Positions 3,084-64,000 of a stretch of DNA of 64,000 nt are shown one piece after another. Every line of letters starts with the position of its first letter. Within the stretch, counting starts at the first letter, position 1. The notes beneath the pieces were generated by a model that saw nothing but the letters and a program-made list of their open reading frames with translations, was not told the DNA's origin and did not search any database. The translations under genes and the position numbers were made by a program. The stretch lies in the sequence record OR513085.1; one strand, 5' to 3'.

Positions 3084-3133
3084 AACAATACTTGCCGGGT
3101 TACCGGATTTTTCATGATTTTTTTATTTTTTTG

Positions 3134-3167
3134 CACCCTGACTATCGCTTTTAGTCAGGGTGTTTTT
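3134..3167 (+). terminator. Intrinsic terminator
   Basis: CACCCTGACTA / TAGTCAGGGTG + T run. Confidence 0.8.
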
Positions 3168-3200: not shown

Positions 3201-3232
3201 TTTTCATATGTCGTTTATTTTTCTTAAATTTA
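3201..3232 (+). promoter_or_regulatory. Early host-type promoter
   Basis: TTTTCATATGTCG with TTTTC 19 nt before TAAATTTA. Confidence 0.65.
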
Positions 3233-5145: not shown

Positions 5146-7614
5146 ATGGCAACAATCAAAGAAATTTTAAAGCCTAACAACACGGCTAACGACATAGTCT
5201 TGCATGTTGGTGCTAACAAAACTACTACGCCAGAGAACGCATATTCAGACTTGCAATTTCAAGCAGGATTTTATTGGCCTATAGTAAAAGTTAGATCAAC
5301 TACATTCACTAAGCCAGCAATCAAAACGTTTGAGCTTAACTTCGGTTACCAACTATTACCAACGTTAGAGTTTATGGTTGTTGATGACTCTAGGTCGTTC
5401 CAACAATCAGACTATCCTGTTAAAAATGATGTAGTTACAGTATTCCTTGGCAACAACTACGATACCTCATCAAAGCCAATACAACTTGACTTTCTAATTG
5501 ATGACGTAACTACACTAAATAGCATGGATGGTTCCGGCTCGGCTAAGCATAGCTTTACCTGTACGTTAGCAATCGAGCATGCTTTTGAAAACATAAATTT
5601 TGCAGGAGAACAAACATCACTTAATGTTTTGTACGAACTTTGTAAAGCTATGAACTTGGGGTTAGTTACAAATTTGGATAGTACTAACGATCGCTACAAA
5701 TATCGTCAATATAGCAAAACAAATATTGAATATTTGAAAGATGTTTGTTCCAAAGTTTATGTCGATGATGCTACAATTATTCATTACTACATTGACCAGT
5801 ACTTTAGACTTAACGTTATTGACATTAATGCAATACTTAGCGCACCAGCACCTAGATTGCCAGTACGTCGTGACGTTACGTTCTTCAAAACGTTAGCAAA
5901 TCCTGAGGAGCTAGTACTAAACAATGCTCAGTACAACCTAACTAATGTACAATTTAAGTTTGGTAGCTACACTACGTCTAGTAATGCATTTGAAACATAC
6001 AAGGAAGTTAAGCCTGTCGAATCTACTGTAATTAACAAAGATTATTCGCAAGCTATTGTTAAAAGTACAGTAAAAGATACGCGAGTTAAGGCTAACGCTA
6101 CAACCGGAGGAGCTACAAAAAGTGAGAACGTTACAGAAAATAACGTAACAAATAGCAAACGTATACAAACAATTGCTATTGATGGCGAACACAACAGTAA
6201 CGTACAGCAATTAGGTAGCAATGCAAACAAAAGTAGGTTTAGATACTTAACAAACAACTCTATAACGCTAAGGCTTAACAATCCTAGCAACTTACTAAAC
6301 ATTAACCAAATGGTACCTGTTGAGTTGTACAAGCCAGATCAGTTTTCACAAACACCGCTAAAAAATTCAGATACTAACCTAGATAGCACACAACGGCCAA
6401 TAACGCCAGATGGTACAGAAGCCATTAATCCAACGTTATCAGGTGACTATGCAATAACAGGAATGACTTTTGCATATCGTCAAAATCAAAACCTTTGGCA
6501 GGAATTGAAGTTGATTCGTAGAGAATGGAAGCCTCAGCATTATGACGTTGACAAATCTCGTAAAATTGACTTATCAGAAGCTACATTCGGTGCGCCTAAG
6601 CCTTATACTTACCCACCACCGCCACCGCCACCTGCAGTAGACAACTCAGGCTATGGCGGGCAATATGGAGGATCATTAGGCAACTGGATGCAAATTGCTA
6701 GAGGTGAGCTAGGAACTGCGGAAGTTGCAGGTGCCGGTTCAAACCCAAGAATTGACGAATATCACCGAGTTGGAGGAGGACTTTCAGGAGGGCAGGCTAA
6801 CGATGCTACTGCATGGTGCGGTTCGTTTGTAGGCTGGTGTATGGTCAAGGCAGGCTACCCTAAACCTAACGGCTCGGCTGCAGCAATATCATGGGCTAAC
6901 TATGGAATACCTTGTGCTCCAGGTACAGTCGGCGCAATAATTGTGTTGAAGCTTAAGCCTAGTAGCATGACTTATTCAGGTAACCACGTAGGATTTTGTG
7001 CAGGCTTGAATGGTGATAAAGTTTCAATTTTAGGAGGTAACCAAGGCAACAGCGTTAGTCAGCTTAACATGGCTTCTGCAAAAGTTATTGCATGGAGGCT
7101 GCCACCCGGCTCACCTAGCCAAGGCATAGCTAACGCAGGCAATAGCGTAGCACCTACAGGACCTTTAAGAATTTCTAACCAAGGTGTTGAATTTATCAAA
7201 TCTAAGGAAGGTTGTAAGCTTACAGCATATTGGGATAGCTATGGTAAAGTATGGACCGTAGGTTACGGAAATACTAAACAAGCTAAGCCTGGCATGACAA
7301 TTACGTACCAACAGGCTGAGCAACTTTTACGTCAAGACATAGTTTACTTTGAAAACTACATAAATCAAAATGTAAAAGTTAAGCTAACGCAGGCTATGTT
7401 TGATGCTTTAGTATGTTTAACGTTCAACACTGGGCCAGGTAAAGTTTCACCTAGCTCAGCCATTGGAATAGCTTTGAAAAATCGGCAATACCAAACTGCA
7501 GCAGATACATTCCTACGTTACAACACATCAAAAGGTAAGTACTTGCAAGGCTTAGCTACTAGAAGGCAACAAGAACGCCAAATGTTTATGAGTCAAGGCG
7601 TAAATCCAATTTAA
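5146..7614 (+). CDS. Baseplate hub (gp27-like) fused to CHAP-like (TIGR02594-type) and GH24 lysozyme domains
   Basis: N-terminal hub-like region; poly-Pro linker; WMQIARGELG..AWCGSFV..GNHVGF; EGCKLTAYWDSYGKVWTVGYG (E-D-T triad). Confidence 0.75.
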   Translation: MATIKEILKPNNTANDIVLHVGANKTTTPENAYSDLQFQAGFYWPIVKVRSTTFTKPAIKTFELNFGYQLLPTLEFMVVDDSRSFQQSDYPVKNDVVTVFLGNNYDTSSKPIQLDFLIDDVTTLNSMDGSGSAKHSFTCTLAIEHAFENINFAGEQTSLNVLYELCKAMNLGLVTNLDSTNDRYKYRQYSKTNIEYLKDVCSKVYVDDATIIHYYIDQYFRLNVIDINAILSAPAPRLPVRRDVTFFKTLANPEELVLNNAQYNLTNVQFKFGSYTTSSNAFETYKEVKPVESTVINKDYSQAIVKSTVKDTRVKANATTGGATKSENVTENNVTNSKRIQTIAIDGEHNSNVQQLGSNANKSRFRYLTNNSITLRLNNPSNLLNINQMVPVELYKPDQFSQTPLKNSDTNLDSTQRPITPDGTEAINPTLSGDYAITGMTFAYRQNQNLWQELKLIRREWKPQHYDVDKSRKIDLSEATFGAPKPYTYPPPPPPPAVDNSGYGGQYGGSLGNWMQIARGELGTAEVAGAGSNPRIDEYHRVGGGLSGGQANDATAWCGSFVGWCMVKAGYPKPNGSAAAISWANYGIPCAPGTVGAIIVLKLKPSSMTYSGNHVGFCAGLNGDKVSILGGNQGNSVSQLNMASAKVIAWRLPPGSPSQGIANAGNSVAPTGPLRISNQGVEFIKSKEGCKLTAYWDSYGKVWTVGYGNTKQAKPGMTITYQQAEQLLRQDIVYFENYINQNVKVKLTQAMFDALVCLTFNTGPGKVSPSSAIGIALKNRQYQTAADTFLRYNTSKGKYLQGLATRRQQERQMFMSQGVNPI

Positions 7615-18036: not shown

Positions 18037-18069
18037 AACCTCGGTTACTTTTTGTAGCCGAGGTTTTTT
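18037..18069 (+). terminator. Intrinsic terminator
   Basis: AACCTCGGTTAC / GTAGCCGAGGTT + T run. Confidence 0.8.
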
Positions 18070-18092
18070 GTGTTAAAATAGTTGCAAAAATA

Positions 18093-21223: not shown

Positions 21224-21255
21224 TTTTCACGTTTCAAATAATTTTCTTATATTTG
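21224..21255 (+). promoter_or_regulatory. Early host-type promoter
   Basis: TGTTTTCACG core, 19 nt, TATATTTG. Confidence 0.7.
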
Positions 21256-22287: not shown

Positions 22288-22701
22288 ATGAAACAAAGAC
22301 TAACAAAACTATTTACATTCTCATTCGTACTAATTGCACTACTTTCACTACAATCATGCTGGGAATTTTCAAGACAGCAAGCTATCAATGACGCTGAGGC
22401 TAAAGGTATTGCAACCTTAAAAGAATCCGAGTCTTCCAAGAAAGCTATGGTTGAACAAGCTAAAGCTGAAAACCAGGCATCTACACTTAAGGCTGAAGCT
22501 ATGGTTAAAATTGCAACTGCCCAGGCTAACGCTGAAATTGAACGAGCTAAAGGTGTTGCCAGAGCTAATGAAATTATCGGCCAATCGCTTAAAGGTAACA
22601 ACGAATACTTAAAGTACTTGCAAATTGACGCAATTAAGGAATCCAAAGGTGCCAAAGTTTACATTCCTACTGAGGCAGGACTTCCAATTATTGAAAGATA
22701 G
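22288..22701 (+). CDS. Membrane/lipoprotein resembling the SPFH (stomatin/prohibitin) C-terminal coiled coil
   Basis: Hydrophobic N-terminus LLSLQSC; AEIERAKGVARANEIIGQSL..YLKYLQI..VYIPTEAGLPI. Confidence 0.6.
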   Translation: MKQRLTKLFTFSFVLIALLSLQSCWEFSRQQAINDAEAKGIATLKESESSKKAMVEQAKAENQASTLKAEAMVKIATAQANAEIERAKGVARANEIIGQSLKGNNEYLKYLQIDAIKESKGAKVYIPTEAGLPIIER

Positions 22702-31393: not shown

Positions 31394-33154
31394 ATGACAA
31401 ATCAAAAATTTGAAAATCTTATAATTGTAGCATCTGGTGCAGGTACTAGAATGGCTGAATATACAATGAACAACACAATTCCAAAGCTTCTTGTTAGTCT
31501 TGGAAACGAAACAATCTGGTCGTCTATGCTTAAAAACATTGACCGAGTTGCCGAATATGTTTTTGTTATTGCCAATAGTAAGCATATTCCAATGTTGCAA
31601 GAGGTTGCAAAACTTACATATCCTGAACAGGCTGAAAACATAATTTATGTTGATTACGATGAACAAGATGGTACAGCAAACACGATTGCTAAAACAGTTT
31701 CTGATAGAATGATTGATGGTACTACTTTGATAGTTTGGTCTGACATTCTTGAAGCTTCTACAGAATCTTTGTTACCGTTAACCAGTTCGTTATCTAAGCT
31801 TAAGGAATATGATGGCGATAATTTACAAGTATGTGTTATAGCAGACAGACAGCCAAGACACCGATTTAAAATTGATGGTTCTGTTATAGAAGAAGTTGCT
31901 GATGCTTCAGGTAACATTGTAGGCGCTTATGCTACTAACGAAATTGCAAAATTTGGAGCATGGTCAGGTTCTCATGGAAGAGGTTTAAGAGATTTTAAAT
32001 TTACTGGTGAAGTTCTAAGGCATAACCAGGACTTTATTTCGTTAGTCAAAGTTATGCATGAACGCGATGATTTACGTTCAATCAAAACTTTCTATGGTGA
32101 CTTTATTGATCTTGGTGATTCTGCAAAATACCAGGCATACATGGCTTCCAAGGAAATAAAAACTCGCTATTTCAACAAGCTAGAAATTGGTACTGACAGA
32201 GTTACTAAAACTGCCACTAATGCTAAAGGCAGAGCAGTTATGGCTAATGAGGCAAGTTTTTATATGTTCATGGAAAAGTCCGGATTTGACCAAATGTTTG
32301 CAGGAGTTATTGGAATGATTGGCGATAGTATTGAAGATGATATGTCTACTTTAGTACTTGAAAAGCTTGACAAAACAGTACACCAGCATATTACAGAACA
32401 TGTAGCTAATGTAAAGAATGTAGATAAACATGCATATACTGCAAGATCGTATGCTGCAAGGATAGCTTACAAAAACTTCAAGGAGTTTATGAAGCCTTTG
32501 CATACAGCAAATCCTGATCATTTTTTACCACAGTCGGATTTTTCAGATGATGTATTAACTAATGCTGCATGGAAGGAATACATTGAAGTAACTAGGTCAA
32601 GGTACGAATCAATCAAAGGATTGCTTTCAGCATCTGACATTATCAGGTTTAATGGCGAAGTTGTGCCAAGCTTTGACTATGTAATGGCTAAGCTAGAAGA
32701 CTACTTACGAAATTCAAACGTACTAAATTTAGGGCTTATCCATGGTGATACTAACACCGCAAATGTTATGATGGATTCCAAAGGCGCTATGAAGCTTATT
32801 GACCCTAGAGGAGTTTTTGGAGATATGCAATATGCAGGTGATACTAATTATGACCTAGCAAAATTCCTTTACGGCTTAACTGGCTACACTGACTTTAATG
32901 ATTCTACAGACTTCAAAGTTAAAAAGGATGGCACTTCGTTATATTGCGAATTATTCAACAAATTGCCATCACCTTGGTATGTTTGCCAGGATAACGAAGG
33001 TAACGACGACATTAATGCGGTTATCTTAGTAGGTCTTATTTGGCTTAAGCTTCCTGCTTACATTATCAACAATCCACTAAAATCGTTAGTAGCTTACTAC
33101 AAAGGCTTGACGTTGCTAAACAAAGCATTGAACGAATACGAATTTACAAGATAA
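31394..33154 (+). CDS. Sugar-nucleotidyltransferase fused to APH/choline-kinase-like phosphotransferase
   Basis: IIVASGAGTRM..PKLLVSLG; EQDGTA; C-terminal IHGDTNTANV, KLIDPRGVFG, YDLAK. Confidence 0.85.
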   Translation: MTNQKFENLIIVASGAGTRMAEYTMNNTIPKLLVSLGNETIWSSMLKNIDRVAEYVFVIANSKHIPMLQEVAKLTYPEQAENIIYVDYDEQDGTANTIAKTVSDRMIDGTTLIVWSDILEASTESLLPLTSSLSKLKEYDGDNLQVCVIADRQPRHRFKIDGSVIEEVADASGNIVGAYATNEIAKFGAWSGSHGRGLRDFKFTGEVLRHNQDFISLVKVMHERDDLRSIKTFYGDFIDLGDSAKYQAYMASKEIKTRYFNKLEIGTDRVTKTATNAKGRAVMANEASFYMFMEKSGFDQMFAGVIGMIGDSIEDDMSTLVLEKLDKTVHQHITEHVANVKNVDKHAYTARSYAARIAYKNFKEFMKPLHTANPDHFLPQSDFSDDVLTNAAWKEYIEVTRSRYESIKGLLSASDIIRFNGEVVPSFDYVMAKLEDYLRNSNVLNLGLIHGDTNTANVMMDSKGAMKLIDPRGVFGDMQYAGDTNYDLAKFLYGLTGYTDFNDSTDFKVKKDGTSLYCELFNKLPSPWYVCQDNEGNDDINAVILVGLIWLKLPAYIINNPLKSLVAYYKGLTLLNKALNEYEFTR

Positions 33155-33161
33155 AGCTTTG

Positions 33162-33194
33162 AAGCCAGAACATTCGGAACGTTCTGGCTTTTTT
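33162..33194 (+). terminator. Intrinsic terminator; late box TATACATA at 33196-33203
   Basis: AAGCCAGAAC / GTTCTGGCTTTTTT. Confidence 0.75.
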
Positions 33195-33230
33195 GTATAC
33201 ATAACAATATAACTAAACAAACATTACGTA

Positions 33231-36200
33231 ATGGCAAAATTTACAAAACTTGCTGGAGAAGTTGCTAAGCTTTACGACGGTAAAGTTACTGGCAGCATTA
33301 TCAAATTTGACAGTGAGGACGACTTATTTAAAGCAGCTGATGAAATTGCAGATCAGTTCGCATTTACAATGGACCAGGATAAACTGACCATCGAGTTCCT
33401 TAACGAAAACATTGACATAAAATTCCTTAAGCAATTTGCTTCTGCAATGGGAGTTTCTCAATTCACTAACGAATCAGTTGACAAACTTACGAAGCAAATA
33501 GGAATTAGCCTTAACGAGGCTGAAGTTGATACCGTTACTACGTTACTAAACAAAGTAGAAAGTCCTGAATATCCTGACGTTGCTAAAGTTGCGGCTGACC
33601 CTATGCAACAAATTGCTGATACTATTACAAACTCTGCAGCTACAGGTGCTACGTTAGATATTGTAGACGGTGAAAATTCTGCTAAACAAATTGTTATCAG
33701 AACTGATGATAAACTTATTGCAGCTACACCAACTGACATCGTAGCAATCAACGAATCAGCTTACGTACACTATGGAATGCATCAGCTTAACGAAAATGAA
33801 TACAATGCACTTAAAGCTTTGGAAGATGTTAATGCTAGACGTAGATTCCTTACAAGCATGGGTATCATGGACTTAGATGCCGATTCAATTTCAAAGAACT
33901 TGGAGTTGCTTAAACCTCTTCATCCTGACATGGATGCTAATGGGTTGCTTCCGCTAAATGAAGCTAACGTAACAATTATTAACGTAAGCAATGCTTTTGC
34001 TAACGAAGCCAGTAACGCTCTAGCTAATGTAGCTAATCTTTATGCTAAGTTTGTTAATGAAAACAATTCATGGACAGTTAAGTCTTACGATGCTGCTGAT
34101 GTTAAAGCTACTTTAGTTTCTGCAGGAATTCCTGCAAACGAAATTTTTATGAATGAGTCTAAAGACATGGACATCTACAACTTACAATCTAAAGTTGCAT
34201 TATTCTGTAAAAAGTCAGGACTTTCAGGAGCCGATGTACAAAAAGCTTTACTACTTGTTAACCTAGAAGCTAAAGAAGCTAAACCTAATTTTAGCAAATA
34301 CGTAAACATAAAGGACTCAATGCTAAACGAATCTGCCGATGCACAGGATGCTGAGGAAATGTTTGAACGTAAAAACAAAGCATATGCTAAAATGATTAGC
34401 AAAGACGGCCTAGCTGCTGAGCTTACTGAATTCCTAGCTTCTTTTGGAGAAAATGCTAAAGTTCCTGAGGATGGTTTAGTTGGTGAGTATGGTGAACTTT
34501 CTGCAGACTTGCAAGAAGGAATCAACAAATTCATGGAAGAGCGTGGTTACTTTGCTAATGAAAGTACTAATTGGACGCTTGATAAAAAATCAAAAGGTGA
34601 ATATAACGAATGGCATATTACTGGCGATGCACTAAACAAAGTAAAATCACGTGATGAAATTTTTGATGTATTACCTGAACTTAAAGGAATCTATAAAACA
34701 CTAATTGATTCTAAAAATGGACTAAAGTACAGCGACCGTGTTAAAGTTGGCAGCATTACAGTTACTGGTGATGATATGGGCGATATTTTAAATTTTCTTA
34801 AAGGTAACGGTTCACTAAATGAATCTGTTGATGCTAACGAGGAAATTGAAAGTGTATACAAATTTGAATCTATAAAAGACATTGAGGTTGCTGCTGCAGC
34901 TAAAGGTTATGTTTGCAAAGGACATTCAGGACAATCCGAATCTTCTGACAAGTATAAATTTGATATTCTAGCTAAAGGTGGCAAAAAATGTGCAATGGGT
35001 ATTTATGACAAAACTAAAAAAATTGCAATACTGGATGTTAACGATGAACATAAAGGTACCGCTTTACTAGAAGCTAAAATGATTAATGAAAGTTTCACTA
35101 ATGAATCTGCAGGCATTGAAAACTTATTCGCATCTATGGGAGCTACATTCAACAAAGAGTTACGTACAGATGGCACTTACAAATACCAAGTTACTGGCTT
35201 AGTAGGTTATGCTAACGAGGCTACTGAAGTACCAAACACTGCCGACCTCATCGCATTTGAAATTCTTAAATTGTACGGAAACTTCAAAGAAGCTACAAGG
35301 CTATCACGTTCAGTAGTTAAACAAGCGTTACGTAATGTTATTGATACATTGAAAGTTGATGACTCTTGGTTAACTGACGAATCTAAATTTATTTCGCTTT
35401 TTGAAGCTATTGATACTATGAGAGTAGACTTTGGCCCAATTGACGAATCTTCAAATTTGCCAACTAAAACAAGCGAATTAAAAATTAACGCATATGTAGC
35501 ATTTAAAAATAATGGTGCAAGAATATTTGGTAAAATTTCAGGCATAAAAGGTGACGAAGTTTCAGTAAAACTAACAAACGGCAAACAAATGCTAGTTGAT
35601 GCTAAAGATGTAATTTTAGGTCTTGAAAATTACGTTAATGAATCAATACCTCAGCAAGAAGCTAAGATTGCCGGAACTAAAGCTAAGATTGCTGAAATTA
35701 AATCAGAGGCTAAGGCTGCTTCGGCTAACGCATCTTCCAAAATTTCCACTGAAAAGGCTAAGTTAGTAAATGCCAGAGCTACTTTGAAAAACCTTAAAAA
35801 GTCAAAGTCGTTAAATGAGTCTAAAGCGCCTCAAGGAGTTGGAGGAAATGTTTATGTAGTACCAAACTCGTCTTTCCAAAATCCTTGGCTAACACATAAG
35901 CTTGAAACTTCACTAGGTATGCGAGGATATCAATTTGCTAACCAATTCAAGTCTGACATCGTAAACGCCGACATTATGGTTGACTATTATGTTGCAAAAG
36001 ACGACAAAGTTAGTGAAGTTTGTATGGACATGGAAGGTACTTCAAAACCTCAAAAGACTGAAATTATAGCTACACCAGTTTCAATTTACATTAACGAAAA
36101 CAATGTACTTTGTTTCAATGAAAATCCAATTCCTACAGAAATTGCAGAAAACGGGCAGATTGGTTCAGTAGCACAATTCAAGGAATATGCTAAATACATT

Positions 36201-41417: not shown

Positions 41418-44400
41418 ATGCTATACAAATACACAACACTCCCGGCAGATACTTCAGCGTTACCAGTAGGCGCTTTGATTCTTACAAAGAGTGGTGACGG
41501 TTACATTCTTGACAACAATAAAGTTGCAGTACCATTCAAAGGTAACGTACTTACTCCTGCATTAATTAACAGCTGGAATGACGCTGCTACTAAAGCTCAC
41601 GTACATTCTAACAAAGATACACTGGACCTTATTAGCTTGCTTTCAATTCAAAAATGGGATGAAGCTTATTCACTAAGACATACGCATTCTAACCTTGCAA
41701 CGTTAGAAACTATAACGCCTGCAAAAATTGCTGAGTGGAATAGTGCAATGAAATTTATAAAAACATTGTCTACTGAGGACTTAGATACTGTAACAGTTAA
41801 TGGAATCTACACACAGCCATCTAATGCTAATGCAACAACCGCAAATCACTATCCTATTGGTTATGCAGGAACTATAACAGTGCTAGGTAATGGTGGCAAT
41901 CACATTGTTCAGGAATATGTTAGACTTGCATCAGGTGCTACAGGTAACACTAAATATCGCAGATACTATTATGTTAGTTCAGGATGGTCTAATTGGCAAA
42001 AATCTTTAGATGATCGTGACATTACTCAGGCAATGATTGATTCTTGGAATCTTGCAGTGTCTTGGGGTAACCATGCTAATGCAGGTTATATGACTCAAAC
42101 GACTTCGGATGCTAGGTATTTAAGACTAATTGGTGGAACGTTAACTGGTGATGTTGCTGTAACTGGAGGCAAAACATTTACATTCACTGCTGCCGATGGC
42201 AAAACTTATGAAGTTAATGGCTCAGGAACTAAACATACTTCAGGTGCTAATGTGTTTTCATCAAATTTTGTAGATTCTAACACTTGGGGAATTACTCACG
42301 GAACTCAGCAAATTTTGACTAAAGACATAGCCAACAATGTTGTAAAAATTGGTAATGACACTTCACCTGCACAATTAAGAATAAAGTCTGCAGTATCTCC
42401 AAATCCAACTTCTACTGTACTTACAAACCCATCCGGTGACGTTTCAATAGTTCCAGCTTTACCGCTATTTACTAACTACCTTGAGCCTAGCTTATTAGCA
42501 AATGCTGATAGCGTAACAACAAAAGGAATTGAAGTTAACTACATTGACGCATCTACACTAAACAAACCGACAACATTAGCTAATGGAACGTTAATGACAC
42601 TAAACATTAACAACTCAGGAGGCTCGCAATTAGCAATATCAACTTCAACAGACCCAGCAGTTTATTTTAGAACTAGAACAAATTCAAATTTTGGAGGATG
42701 GACTAGGTTAGCTACAACTAACGATCTTACTGCATTAGGCCAGGACTACATTAGCAAAACTACTAACGACTTACCTGCTAACTCGGCTTGGTACGTTAAG
42801 AAAGGAACATCTGGAATTGGTGTAGTTGATACTAACTTTATAGGATTATTTGACGCTACTACAAAGGCTTATGTTACTGCAGGCGTACTAAAAATTGTTA
42901 ACGGTGGTATACAAACTGATGCAGCTTCAGTTATTGGAGGAACTACTACATTCAATGCTAACGCTACGTTCAACTCAGCTAACGTTACGTTTGCTAATGG
43001 CGCTAACAGCTCAACGTTAGCTATGGCTGGCACTAGATTAGCTATAGCATCAGGTAATGCCGGCAAAACTGGAAACATAATTGTTGATGGTGATTCGCCA
43101 ATTATTGCAAGACCTGAAACTGTAGTTAATTCTGACACTGTATTAGCAGGATTACCTGTAGGTACTCATGGTGCAGGTACATCCATTGGCGGTGTTAACG
43201 CATCCTTTATAACTTTTGGTAGCCCAGTTACTGGAACTAAAACAAACTTGATAGGTTCTACTACAGGCTTCCTTAAATTTAGATCATCATCAGGCGCTAC
43301 ATTTTCAGATTGGAAATCGTTAGTTGCTTTTGAAGACTTAACGTTAGCTACTACAGATACTTCTGTTAGCTTAACATTCAATGGCATTACAAAGACTGCA
43401 CCATTAACTACCGGAACGTTAACAAACGTAACGTACACCAACAATTGGACATTGCCATTCGGTACAACTAAAGGTTATATTGACATTGAAATGCCTACAT
43501 CTACATCAGGTGACATTATACTTACGTTAGTAGGTTATTGGGGCAATGAAAGACAATCAGGTTCAGTTAAATATCAAATTGGATTTGGTTCAAACACTAC
43601 ACAAATATACGATCAATATGCTAACATAGTTTCCGTTACTGCAGGCCAAGTTTTACTAGATAGTTATGCAGTTAACTTATCCGCAGCAATCGTGTTAGTT
43701 AATGCTAAACCTTGTTTACGTATTTGGTGCATGCGTGACGGAATTTCGCAAACTAACACAGTTAGAGCATTCATGCAAATTAAAACTAGACAAGGTACTG
43801 CATTTACTTCGTTGAACGATGTTAAGCCTCTAGCTTTCGTAGCCGAGCCTAACATTCCAACATTTATGGACCTCGATCAAGCACCTAAGTCAGTTTCATT
43901 TAACCAAATTGCAGTTAGATCATCTGCGCAAAACGATGATAATGCTGCAATTAAGCTTAAAACTGCTAGAATTTCAACATCACCAGCAAATGCAAATGGC
44001 ATTCGTGTAGTAGGTACATCAAATACTGCAGCAGGTTATCTTTATTTAGGTTCAGGTAACAACAGACTGGGTGTTGACGACGGTACTGCAAATTCACCTT
44101 TGCTTTATAATGCATCACCAGTAGTTACAAGAGACTATGCTATAGCAAATGGTTTTATATTTTCAGAAGGCAATGCTATAGGTACTATAAATGGAGTTTC
44201 TGGAGAAATTGGTCTACCTGCTAACTCATTTAAGCCAACAAAATCAGGATTCTACCGAGCTAATGGTGAAAATAACTGGGGTGCATTGTCAATGGCGATA
44301 GCACATCCTGCTAGAAGTGATGGAGGCTTTATGGCTGGTATAGCTTTTGATTATTCAGGAGCCAATGCATACTTAACAGGTAATGATTCTACAGGAGCCA

Positions 44401-59339: not shown

Positions 59340-59397
59340 CTGCCTTATTTAAAATGAATATAAATTGCAACTATTTTTGAAAATAGTTGCAATTTTG

Positions 59398-59429
59398 TTT
59401 TCAAATGTCGTTTATTTTGATTAATTTTA
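59398..59429 (+). promoter_or_regulatory. Early host-type promoter preceded by a perfect 16-bp inverted repeat (59362-59395)
   Basis: TTTTC-19nt-TAATTTTA. Confidence 0.6.
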
Positions 59430-63147: not shown

Positions 63148-63213
63148 ATGAAAAGACGAGACATTATTGTAATTGGCGACTATCACGGATTTGCTGAATA
63201 CGACGGCGTATAA
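63148..63213 (+). pseudogene. 21-aa remnant of a metallophosphoesterase N-terminus
   Basis: MKRRDIIVIGDYHGF (motif I, D-x-H-G) then an early stop. Confidence 0.45.
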
Positions 63214-63233: not shown

Positions 63234-63275
63234 TTCCCAAACGTGAAAACATTTGGGAAATTTTGTTTAAATTTG
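63234..63275 (+). promoter_or_regulatory. Early-type promoter with its -33 core inverted between 8-bp inverted repeats
   Basis: TTCCCAAA-CGTGAAAACA-TTTGGGAA, 8 nt, TAAATTTG; late box CATAAATA 63289-96. Confidence 0.6.
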
Positions 63276-63310
63276 TATATAAACTAAACATAAATAAACC
63301 AAACAACAAC

Positions 63311-63910
63311 ATGAAAAACTTCTTTCAGTTTATAAATGAATCCATAAAATCGGATAATGTAGACTATTCAAAAAATGTAAAGCTTACTAATGCGGCGTTA
63401 CAAGATAAAAATGTACTTAAATTCGTTGCTAACGTAATATCTTTGTACAAACTTGATTGTAGCGTAGAGGAATTTATTAAGCAATCAGTATTCAGTATTT
63501 CAGATGCTAAACGACAATTCAAAGTAAAAGCTAAATCAAAAGCCGGCAAAGCTATTGAAGTTACTATGATTGATTCTACGCAATACGAATACACTTCTGC
63601 TAGTCCAAGCGTGCCATTTGGAGAATACGACACTGCTAAGCATACTAAAGGCAAACTAGTAAATGTTACTTCATCAAATTATGCTAATGAAGTTAATGAT
63701 GGCGACACTGTACTTTGCGGAACTACTATAGCACCACAAAGCCAAGTTACTTTAGCTACTAGACTTGAACCAGATTTACGTACAGTAGTTGACAAATATG
63801 CCGATAGTAAAGAAAAATCTGTACGTATAACTAAAAACAAATATCGTAATGAACCAGGCCGAGATGATGAGGTTATGGACATTAGCATTATTACTGCAGT
63901 AGTAAAATAA
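63311..63910 (+). CDS. Putative internal head protein with leader MKNFFQFINE|S
   Basis: ATG 63311; leader nearly identical to that of 8358. Confidence 0.6.
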   Translation: MKNFFQFINESIKSDNVDYSKNVKLTNAALQDKNVLKFVANVISLYKLDCSVEEFIKQSVFSISDAKRQFKVKAKSKAGKAIEVTMIDSTQYEYTSASPSVPFGEYDTAKHTKGKLVNVTSSNYANEVNDGDTVLCGTTIAPQSQVTLATRLEPDLRTVVDKYADSKEKSVRITKNKYRNEPGRDDEVMDISIITAVVK

Positions 63911-63930
63911 AACAATTTTTTAAAAATAGT

Positions 63931-63972
63931 TTCCCAAATGTTTTCACGTTTGGGAATTTTTGTTTATATTTG
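63931..63972 (+). promoter_or_regulatory. Early host-type promoter
   Basis: TTCCCAAA-TGTTTTCACG-TTTGGGAA, 8 nt, TATATTTG. Confidence 0.7.
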
Positions 63973-64000
63973 TATTATAAAATTAATCAAATTAATTGGT

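Follow-up and report, generated by a model that had tools for sequence, protein, structure and literature searches.

Why do two short promoter-like elements, standing on either side of a single phage gene, carry identical inverted-repeat arms around a 10-bp core that reads in opposite directions, and what would this flip do to the gene between them? The locus lies near the end of the window, that is, the whole stretch of 64 kb of DNA that was analysed, which corresponds with 100% identity to the last 64 kb of the Chryseobacterium phage MA9V-2 (OR513085.1, 218,539 bp); window positions are obtained by subtracting 154,539 from the positions of the record. MA9V-2 is a jumbo T4-like phage of Bacteroidota, its annotation comprising a T4-like gene set, and it encodes a gp55-like late sigma factor. 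In the phage collection, MA9V-1 alone was found as a close relative, with 88% identity across the window stretch and a mean identity of about 85% over the aligned DNA of the two phages. All other relatives in the phage records stayed below 40% identity, a search of IMG/VR with the topoisomerase protein returned no close relative, and MA9V-3 was ruled out as an unrelated phage of 103 kb. The words promoter and terminator are absent from the published MA9V-2 paper. Just before the start of the window, a TnpB-family gene (record 152,932-154,259) was observed that belongs to a MA9V-2-specific segment and separates the two annotated pieces of DNA polymerase B.

The records of MA9V-2 and MA9V-1 each close with a 127-bp copy of their own start; in MA9V-2 this terminal repeat occupies window positions 63874-64000 (record 218,413-218,539) and is the same as record positions 1-127. 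Such a repeat is typical of a circular, short-read-style assembly with k=127, and the published "linear" ends are arbitrary. Because the overlap is that of a circular assembly, the second of the two elements (copy 2) lies away from any physical genome end, and by the same overlap it appears twice in the MA9V-2 record.

Both elements have a core of 10 nt and perfect arms of 8 bp (Table 1). The preliminary description of this locus had reported a flipped 10-bp core between the same arms, and this was borne out: the two cores are exact reverse complements, and the arm-N10-arm pattern, searched with up to 2 mismatches, occurs exactly 2 times in the window, where shuffled sequences give an expectation of 0.03. 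Since the cores are reverse-complementary and the arms form a perfect dyad, the whole 26-mers are mutual reverse complements. The flanks of the two elements are collinear direct repeats and are not inverted, and the difference is therefore a true micro-inversion of 10-26 bp. A box of the TAnnTTTG type on the + strand, 8 nt after each element, was equally found where it had been described.

Table 1. Positions in the window of the two hairpin elements, the gene between them and related cassettes.
Feature	Position	Strand	Remark
Copy 1, hairpin cassette with flipped loop	63234..63259	+	arm TTCCCAAA 63234-63241; core CGTGAAAACA 63242-63251; arm TTTGGGAA 63252-63259
T-rich spacer and -7 box of copy 1	63260..63275	+	spacer ATTTTGTT; box TAAATTTG at 63268-63275
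Candidate T4-type late promoter box	63289..63296	+	CATAAATA; 14 nt before the start codon; inference
MA9V2_269, 199-aa strain-specific ORFan	63311..63910	+	N-terminus MKNFFQFINE|S; leader MKNFFQFINE, then S, at 63311-63340
Copy 2, hairpin cassette, forward	63931..63956	+	core TGTTTTCACG; arms identical to copy 1
-7 box of copy 2	63965..63972	+	TATATTTG; holds the recombination joint
Ordinary family member for comparison	59362..59429	+	15-bp-stem hairpin with the AAAATAGTTGC module as 3' arm, then T-run/TTTTCA motif; -7-type box at 59422
Other family boxes in the window	3225, 18117, 19584, 21248, 23180, 27270, 27626, 54512, 60438	+	

The significance of the core becomes apparent from the family to which the two elements belong. 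By using a position-weight matrix that was built from obvious look-alike cassettes and run on both phage genomes, 36 cassettes were identified in MA9V-2 and 41 in MA9V-1, on the + strand only. When the core columns were masked, so that the detection of a cassette could not hinge on the orientation of its core, 34 cassettes were recovered from each genome, and copy 1 was the only one of these 68 with a reversed core. The consensus is composed of a AAAATAGTTGC module, a strongly conserved TTTTCA block, an A/T-rich spacer of about 19 nt and a -7-type box (TAnnTTTG-type), and among the upstream blocks conservation is highest in TTTTCA, at about 1.5-1.7 bits per position. The core of copy 1 scores -7.7 bits as written and +14.3 bits when reverse-complemented, in agreement with the earlier claim that the flip costs the element its conserved TTTTC block. 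Since copy 1 alone scores reversed, core orientation appears to be under constraint, and copy 1 resembles a promoter that has been damaged. It had also been stated that there is no -7 box in the reverse direction, and the matrix indeed gave 0 family-type hits on the - strand. As a separate candidate, an antisense promoter made by the flip was ruled out, the - strand having neither a -7 box nor a matrix hit.

Two flavours of the box occur in the family, TATATTTG-TATTATA and TAAATTTA-CATATAAT. The cassettes at window positions 21248, 23180 and 27270, as compared with those at 3225, 18117 and 54512, are examples of two classes that differ by the downstream half; these may represent two temporal promoter classes that share one common upstream half. 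The TTTTCA motif differs from the canonical -33 TTTG of Bacteroidota. Promoters with the layout TTTTCATATGTC...TAAATTTG were also noticed in a few unrelated uncultivated viral contigs of IMG/VR (at 1543-1600, 1754-1810 and 686-740 of three separate contigs), and because of this recurrence the upstream motif may be a wider phage or host signal.

The cassettes are predicted to do more than start transcription. At least 10 members have a strong hairpin whose 3' arm is formed by the upstream module and whose T-run continues into TTTTCA, and in other members a GC-rich hairpin lies slightly further upstream; as hairpins are thus fused to the upstream promoter module, the family can be described as composite terminator/promoter cassettes. 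In the 26-bp variant the hairpin is shifted onto the TTTTCA block, which is found inside the loop. The stem is perfect over 8 bp, or 10-11 bp long if a G-U pair is counted, and a T-run comes after it. Stable RNA folds were predicted in both orientations, with -13.1 and -14.9 kcal/mol and z-scores of -2.9 and -4.5. The sequence presents the G+C-containing stem-loop and subsequent U-run by which intrinsic terminators are defined, and copy 2 is picked up on the + strand by a terminator consensus scan; in Rfam there was no family match, the sole hit being a chance miRNA far below threshold. By consensus and conservation, on which the promoter and terminator roles are assigned, both hairpin copies are terminator-like. 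Copy 2 is the predicted terminator of MA9V2_269, and its core the putative upstream promoter motif of the topoisomerase gene. With TTTTCA in the hairpin loop and a T-run after it, the same 40 nt could terminate one transcript and initiate the one that follows.

Each of the two phages has three copies of the 26-mer, located in the MA9V-2 record at 58 (= 218,470, copy 2), 125,777 and 217,773 (copy 1), and in MA9V-1 at 22,297, 85,250 and 177,578. All six distinct copies are 26/26 identical, five being forward and copy 1 of the window alone being flipped. The comparison with a related genome that had been proposed as a check has accordingly shown all three MA9V-1 copies to be forward, with the flip confined to copy 1 of MA9V-2. 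The forward MA9V-1 copy at 85,250 has its immediate flanks in common with copy 1, over 8 nt upstream and 15 nt downstream, and these two cassettes differ by little more than the flip. A large inversion, considered as another origin of the flip, was ruled out because copy 1 and the forward copies have collinear flanks. As a single relative is available for comparison, the direction of the flip rests on majority rule. The exact 26-mer is absent from IMG/VR, from metagenome contigs and from genome contigs. The perfect identity of the six 26-mers, at about 85% genome identity, could reflect selection for a protein-binding site. An orthologous gene of 69 aa is preceded by the hairpin cassette in MA9V-1, and by an ordinary cassette in MA9V-2.

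Comparison of the gene order in the two phages reveals what copies 1 and 2 have in common besides their arms: they mark a gene-replacement junction. In MA9V-1, a thioredoxin gene and a small ORF are followed by one forward cassette and a denV-like gene (Pyr_excise, phrog_624), after which come a different AT-palindrome promoter and the topoisomerase gene. In MA9V-2, the place of the denV-like gene is taken by MA9V2_269, which is specific to this phage, and copy 2 is positioned 64 nt upstream of MA9V2_001, the gene for the topoisomerase II B subunit. Up to TATATTTGTA, copy 2 matches the MA9V-1 cassette, and beyond it the MA9V-1 topoisomerase promoter; since the match switches partner at this point, the crossover is placed inside the shared -7 box. 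An unannotated ORF of 21 codons (MKRRDIIVIGDYHGFAEYDGV) was seen at window positions 63148-63213, after the thioredoxin gene and before copy 1, and a similar ORF of 24 codons is located at the equivalent place in MA9V-1 (sequence L003, about 5298-5372).

A second locus shows a comparable arrangement, in which two direct cassette copies of about 90 nt flank a MA9V-2-specific DEAD/DEAH helicase gene (record 32,866-35,217), the terminator hairpin being present once in MA9V-1, with a different promoter. Across the genome, 10 of 60 breakpoints of MA9V-2-specific segments fall within 80 nt of a cassette box, an enrichment with p = 4e-6 against random genome positions; against a gene-junction null, p was about 0.03 for left breakpoints, and the enrichment was not significant for all breakpoints. 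The flip also bears on how such exchanges might be reversed. At present no identical direct repeat longer than 9 bp flanks MA9V2_269, and with a forward copy 1 this length would be 26 bp; recombination from cassette to cassette should therefore be less likely to remove the gene. That the flip was selected because it reduces gene loss is a speculation.

The gene that is bracketed in this manner has neither a Pfam nor a PHROG family, and no homologue of it was found in a word search of 5.8 billion proteins. Its beginning is more informative. The start MKxFxxF(I/V)NE is shared by four MA9V-2 genes, namely MA9V2_269 and those at record positions 162,897, 166,687 and 216,401, and because the same type of leader opens four genes, it is probably a capsid-targeting sequence that is cut by the head protease, the MA9V2_269 product being by this reading of its N-terminus a probable capsid-packaged protein. 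TATAAATA and one-off variants of it occur upstream of many structural genes, including the major capsid gene, and a similar 5' leader (ATAAATAAAC...CAACAAC) precedes another leader-bearing gene, MA9V2_265. Late expression of MA9V2_269 from the CATAAATA box would be consistent with a head-packaged protein.

How the loop came to be inverted was approached by a survey of loop flips, in which about 800 informative hairpins per direction were compared between MA9V-1 and MA9V-2 with blastn-short, about 300 of them having an orthologue in the same orientation. One further flip was found, in a terminator with a 13-bp stem (MA9V-2 about 44,020-44,050; MA9V-1 about 3,130-3,160), where the 5-nt loop is CAAAA in MA9V-2 and TTTTG in MA9V-1 and one stem change is also present. 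A doubtful case concerns the cassette upstream module AAAATAGTTG at window positions 18065-18090 (record about 172,604), as compared with MA9V-1 at about 132,528; the inversion would lie between TTTTTG/CAAAAA arms in MA9V-1, and the match of the flipped form is partial. Six-frame searches of both phage records for serine and tyrosine recombinases (PF00239, PF00589) were negative. Template switching during replication is known to invert hairpin loops (Monttinen and Loytynoja, 2022; PMC8794818). Because loop inversion recurs, a template-switch type is known and such recombinases are absent from both phages, the flip is read as a sporadic mutation that was later fixed.

We therefore regard it as probable that copy 1 carries a fixed loop inversion of the template-switch type, by which an early-type promoter was disabled and the terminator was kept. 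The cassettes would act as portable recombination sites, comparable to the promoter-early stem-loop (PeSL) cassettes of other T4-type phages, that bracket a gene whose product is probably packaged into the capsid. The inversion of the loop in the upstream copy is most likely the result of template switching across the arms of the hairpin during replication. As the hairpin and the T-run are kept, the terminator would survive the flip. With its conserved upstream motif reversed, the early-type promoter of MA9V2_269 is probably weakened or dead, and expression of the gene would then be left to the bare -7 box, to read-through or to the candidate late box.

Other explanations must be weighed against this fixed inversion. 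In a programmed or high-frequency reversible micro-switch, the flipping of the 10-bp core would give mixed ON/OFF early expression of MA9V2_269. In its form the architecture would permit reversal, its arms being perfect and its length preserved, the flip strikes precisely the conserved motif, and the site after the thioredoxin gene and the small ORF is forward in MA9V-1 and flipped in MA9V-2. This last pair is, however, no simple same-site flip, because the MA9V-1 element there has the flanks of copy 2 and not those of copy 1. In addition, a segment of 10-26 bp is far smaller than the known recombinase-driven invertible promoters, neither phage encodes a serine or tyrosine recombinase, the core is forward in 5 of 6 copies and 67 of 68 cassettes, and the 1-2 flips among about 300 comparable hairpins per direction fit rare mutation, all of which makes such a switch very improbable. 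Hardly more credible is a recombinase-free variant, a flip-flop driven by replication, in which populations keep a minority in the opposite state and the inverted 26-bp repeats protect the gene; if true, phage populations would harbour a minority with the opposite early-expression state of an injected capsid protein. It is also unlikely that the arms TTCCCAAA/TTTGGGAA are the operator of a dimeric phage or host regulator, with the hairpin and the orientation of the loop being incidental. A perfect dyad does overlap the promoter, and the six copies have stayed identical at all 26 positions in genomes with a mean identity of about 85% over their aligned DNA. The downstream genes, however, are without a common theme (a topoisomerase subunit, a Janus/Ocnus-like gene, the 69-aa unknown, the denV-like gene and the ORFan), and the orthologous 69-aa gene lies behind the element in MA9V-1 but behind an ordinary cassette in MA9V-2. 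The centres of the half-sites are separated by 18 bp, not a whole number of helical turns, and no candidate binding protein was found.

As exact inverted repeats, the two 26-mers enclose 671 bp, and T4-like phages recombine actively, which would allow homologous recombination to invert the enclosed segment as an on/off device. Worked out from the sequence, such an inversion leaves the local promoter context of the gene unchanged and the topoisomerase promoter untouched, and 26 bp is short for efficient homologous recombination; the idea is accordingly given very little credence. An assembly or sequencing artefact at the palindrome is the most improbable of the explanations, even though the record is a short-read-style circular assembly with a 127-bp overlap and palindromes can yield strand-switch chimeras. 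Unique flanks on either side fix the locus, and an artefact would need to have prevailed in the consensus of a single copy while two others in MA9V-2 were assembled forward. Among the interpretations that the preliminary description had put side by side, the fixed inversion is hence the best supported, by the forward core in 67 of 68 cassettes and 5 of 6 hairpin copies and by the late-type box and leader downstream together with the gp55-like late sigma factor, while the ON/OFF switch gained no positive support and the operator gained none. The composite terminator/promoter nature of the cassettes, the third copy outside the window and the gene-replacement junction had not formed part of that description.

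A PeSL-like cassette and a template-switch loop inversion are both of kinds already known, and the value of this locus lies in where and how they are met. The idea that portable cassettes serve as recombination handles for accessory genes would be extended from Proteobacteria to a jumbo phage of Bacteroidota, with a promoter grammar that differs from that of the T4-like phages of Proteobacteria. The locus also offers a clean natural inversion of a hairpin loop, in which a conserved promoter motif is reversed and the terminator is spared, so the forward and flipped cassettes constitute a ready-made mutant pair for the function of TTTTCA. MA9V2_269, in turn, becomes a candidate for a packaged and injected protein. 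Because MA9V-2 is under development for biocontrol, knowledge of its plastic loci is of practical use.

The closest parallel to the cassettes is provided by the PeSLs of the T4-type phages RB49/phi1, PST and nt-1 (Arbiol et al., 2010, PMC2839356; Comeau et al., 2014, PMC4122927). These are short intergenic units in which an early promoter of the host type is combined with a terminator stem-loop. They are present in dozens of same-strand copies per genome, and the stem-loop can extend over the -35 box; ORFans are flanked by them, and insertions, deletions and replacements between close relatives are explained by recombination between PeSLs (PMC2839356, PMC4122927). The MA9V cassettes likewise combine a host-type early promoter consensus with a stem-loop in one intergenic motif, are dispersed in many same-strand copies (36 and 41) over T4-like genomes, and flank the strain-specific MA9V2_269 and helicase genes, with a recombination joint within the cassette. 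They differ in that the promoter is of the Bacteroidota type (-7 TAnnTTTG plus TTTTCA) where PeSLs have the sigma-70 -35/-10, and they have no sequence homology with the RB49/phi1 cassettes, which makes them an analogue and not a homologue. Promoter and terminator activity, which together with mini-circle formation characterizes PeSLs, is putative in the MA9V cassettes. A flipped loop in the stem-loop, as present here, was not found in the passages on PeSLs that were consulted.

The gene between the copies invites comparison with the internal-protein (IP) loci of T-even phages, where elements made of an early promoter and an AT-rich stem-loop border variable genes whose products are packaged in the capsid and injected (PMC2839356). 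MA9V2_269 resembles them by its IP-type leader, which ends in the protease-site-like NE|S. Unlike IP genes, it adjoins the thioredoxin and topoisomerase genes, and its packaging and cleavage are predicted.

In the known invertible-promoter switches, about 100 bp or more are inverted and a site-specific recombinase is needed. The present locus shares with the invertons of Bacteroidota and with fimS/hin-type switches a promoter element between inverted repeats, whose orientation determines which way the motif faces; it is set apart from invertons by a segment of 10-26 bp, arms of 8 bp and the lack of a phage recombinase gene.

The flip itself agrees with the template-switch inversions (PMC8794818) in its perfect arms, in a loop that is the exact reverse complement, in the preserved length and in the untouched flanks. 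It also resembles them in its sporadic recurrence, another hairpin of the phage lineage being affected. A further parallel is found in the small hairpin-associated inversions of chloroplast DNA. The loop of 10 nt is longer than most reported template-switch loops, and, unlike the usual cases, it holds a conserved promoter motif, so that its inversion is predicted to come at a regulatory cost.
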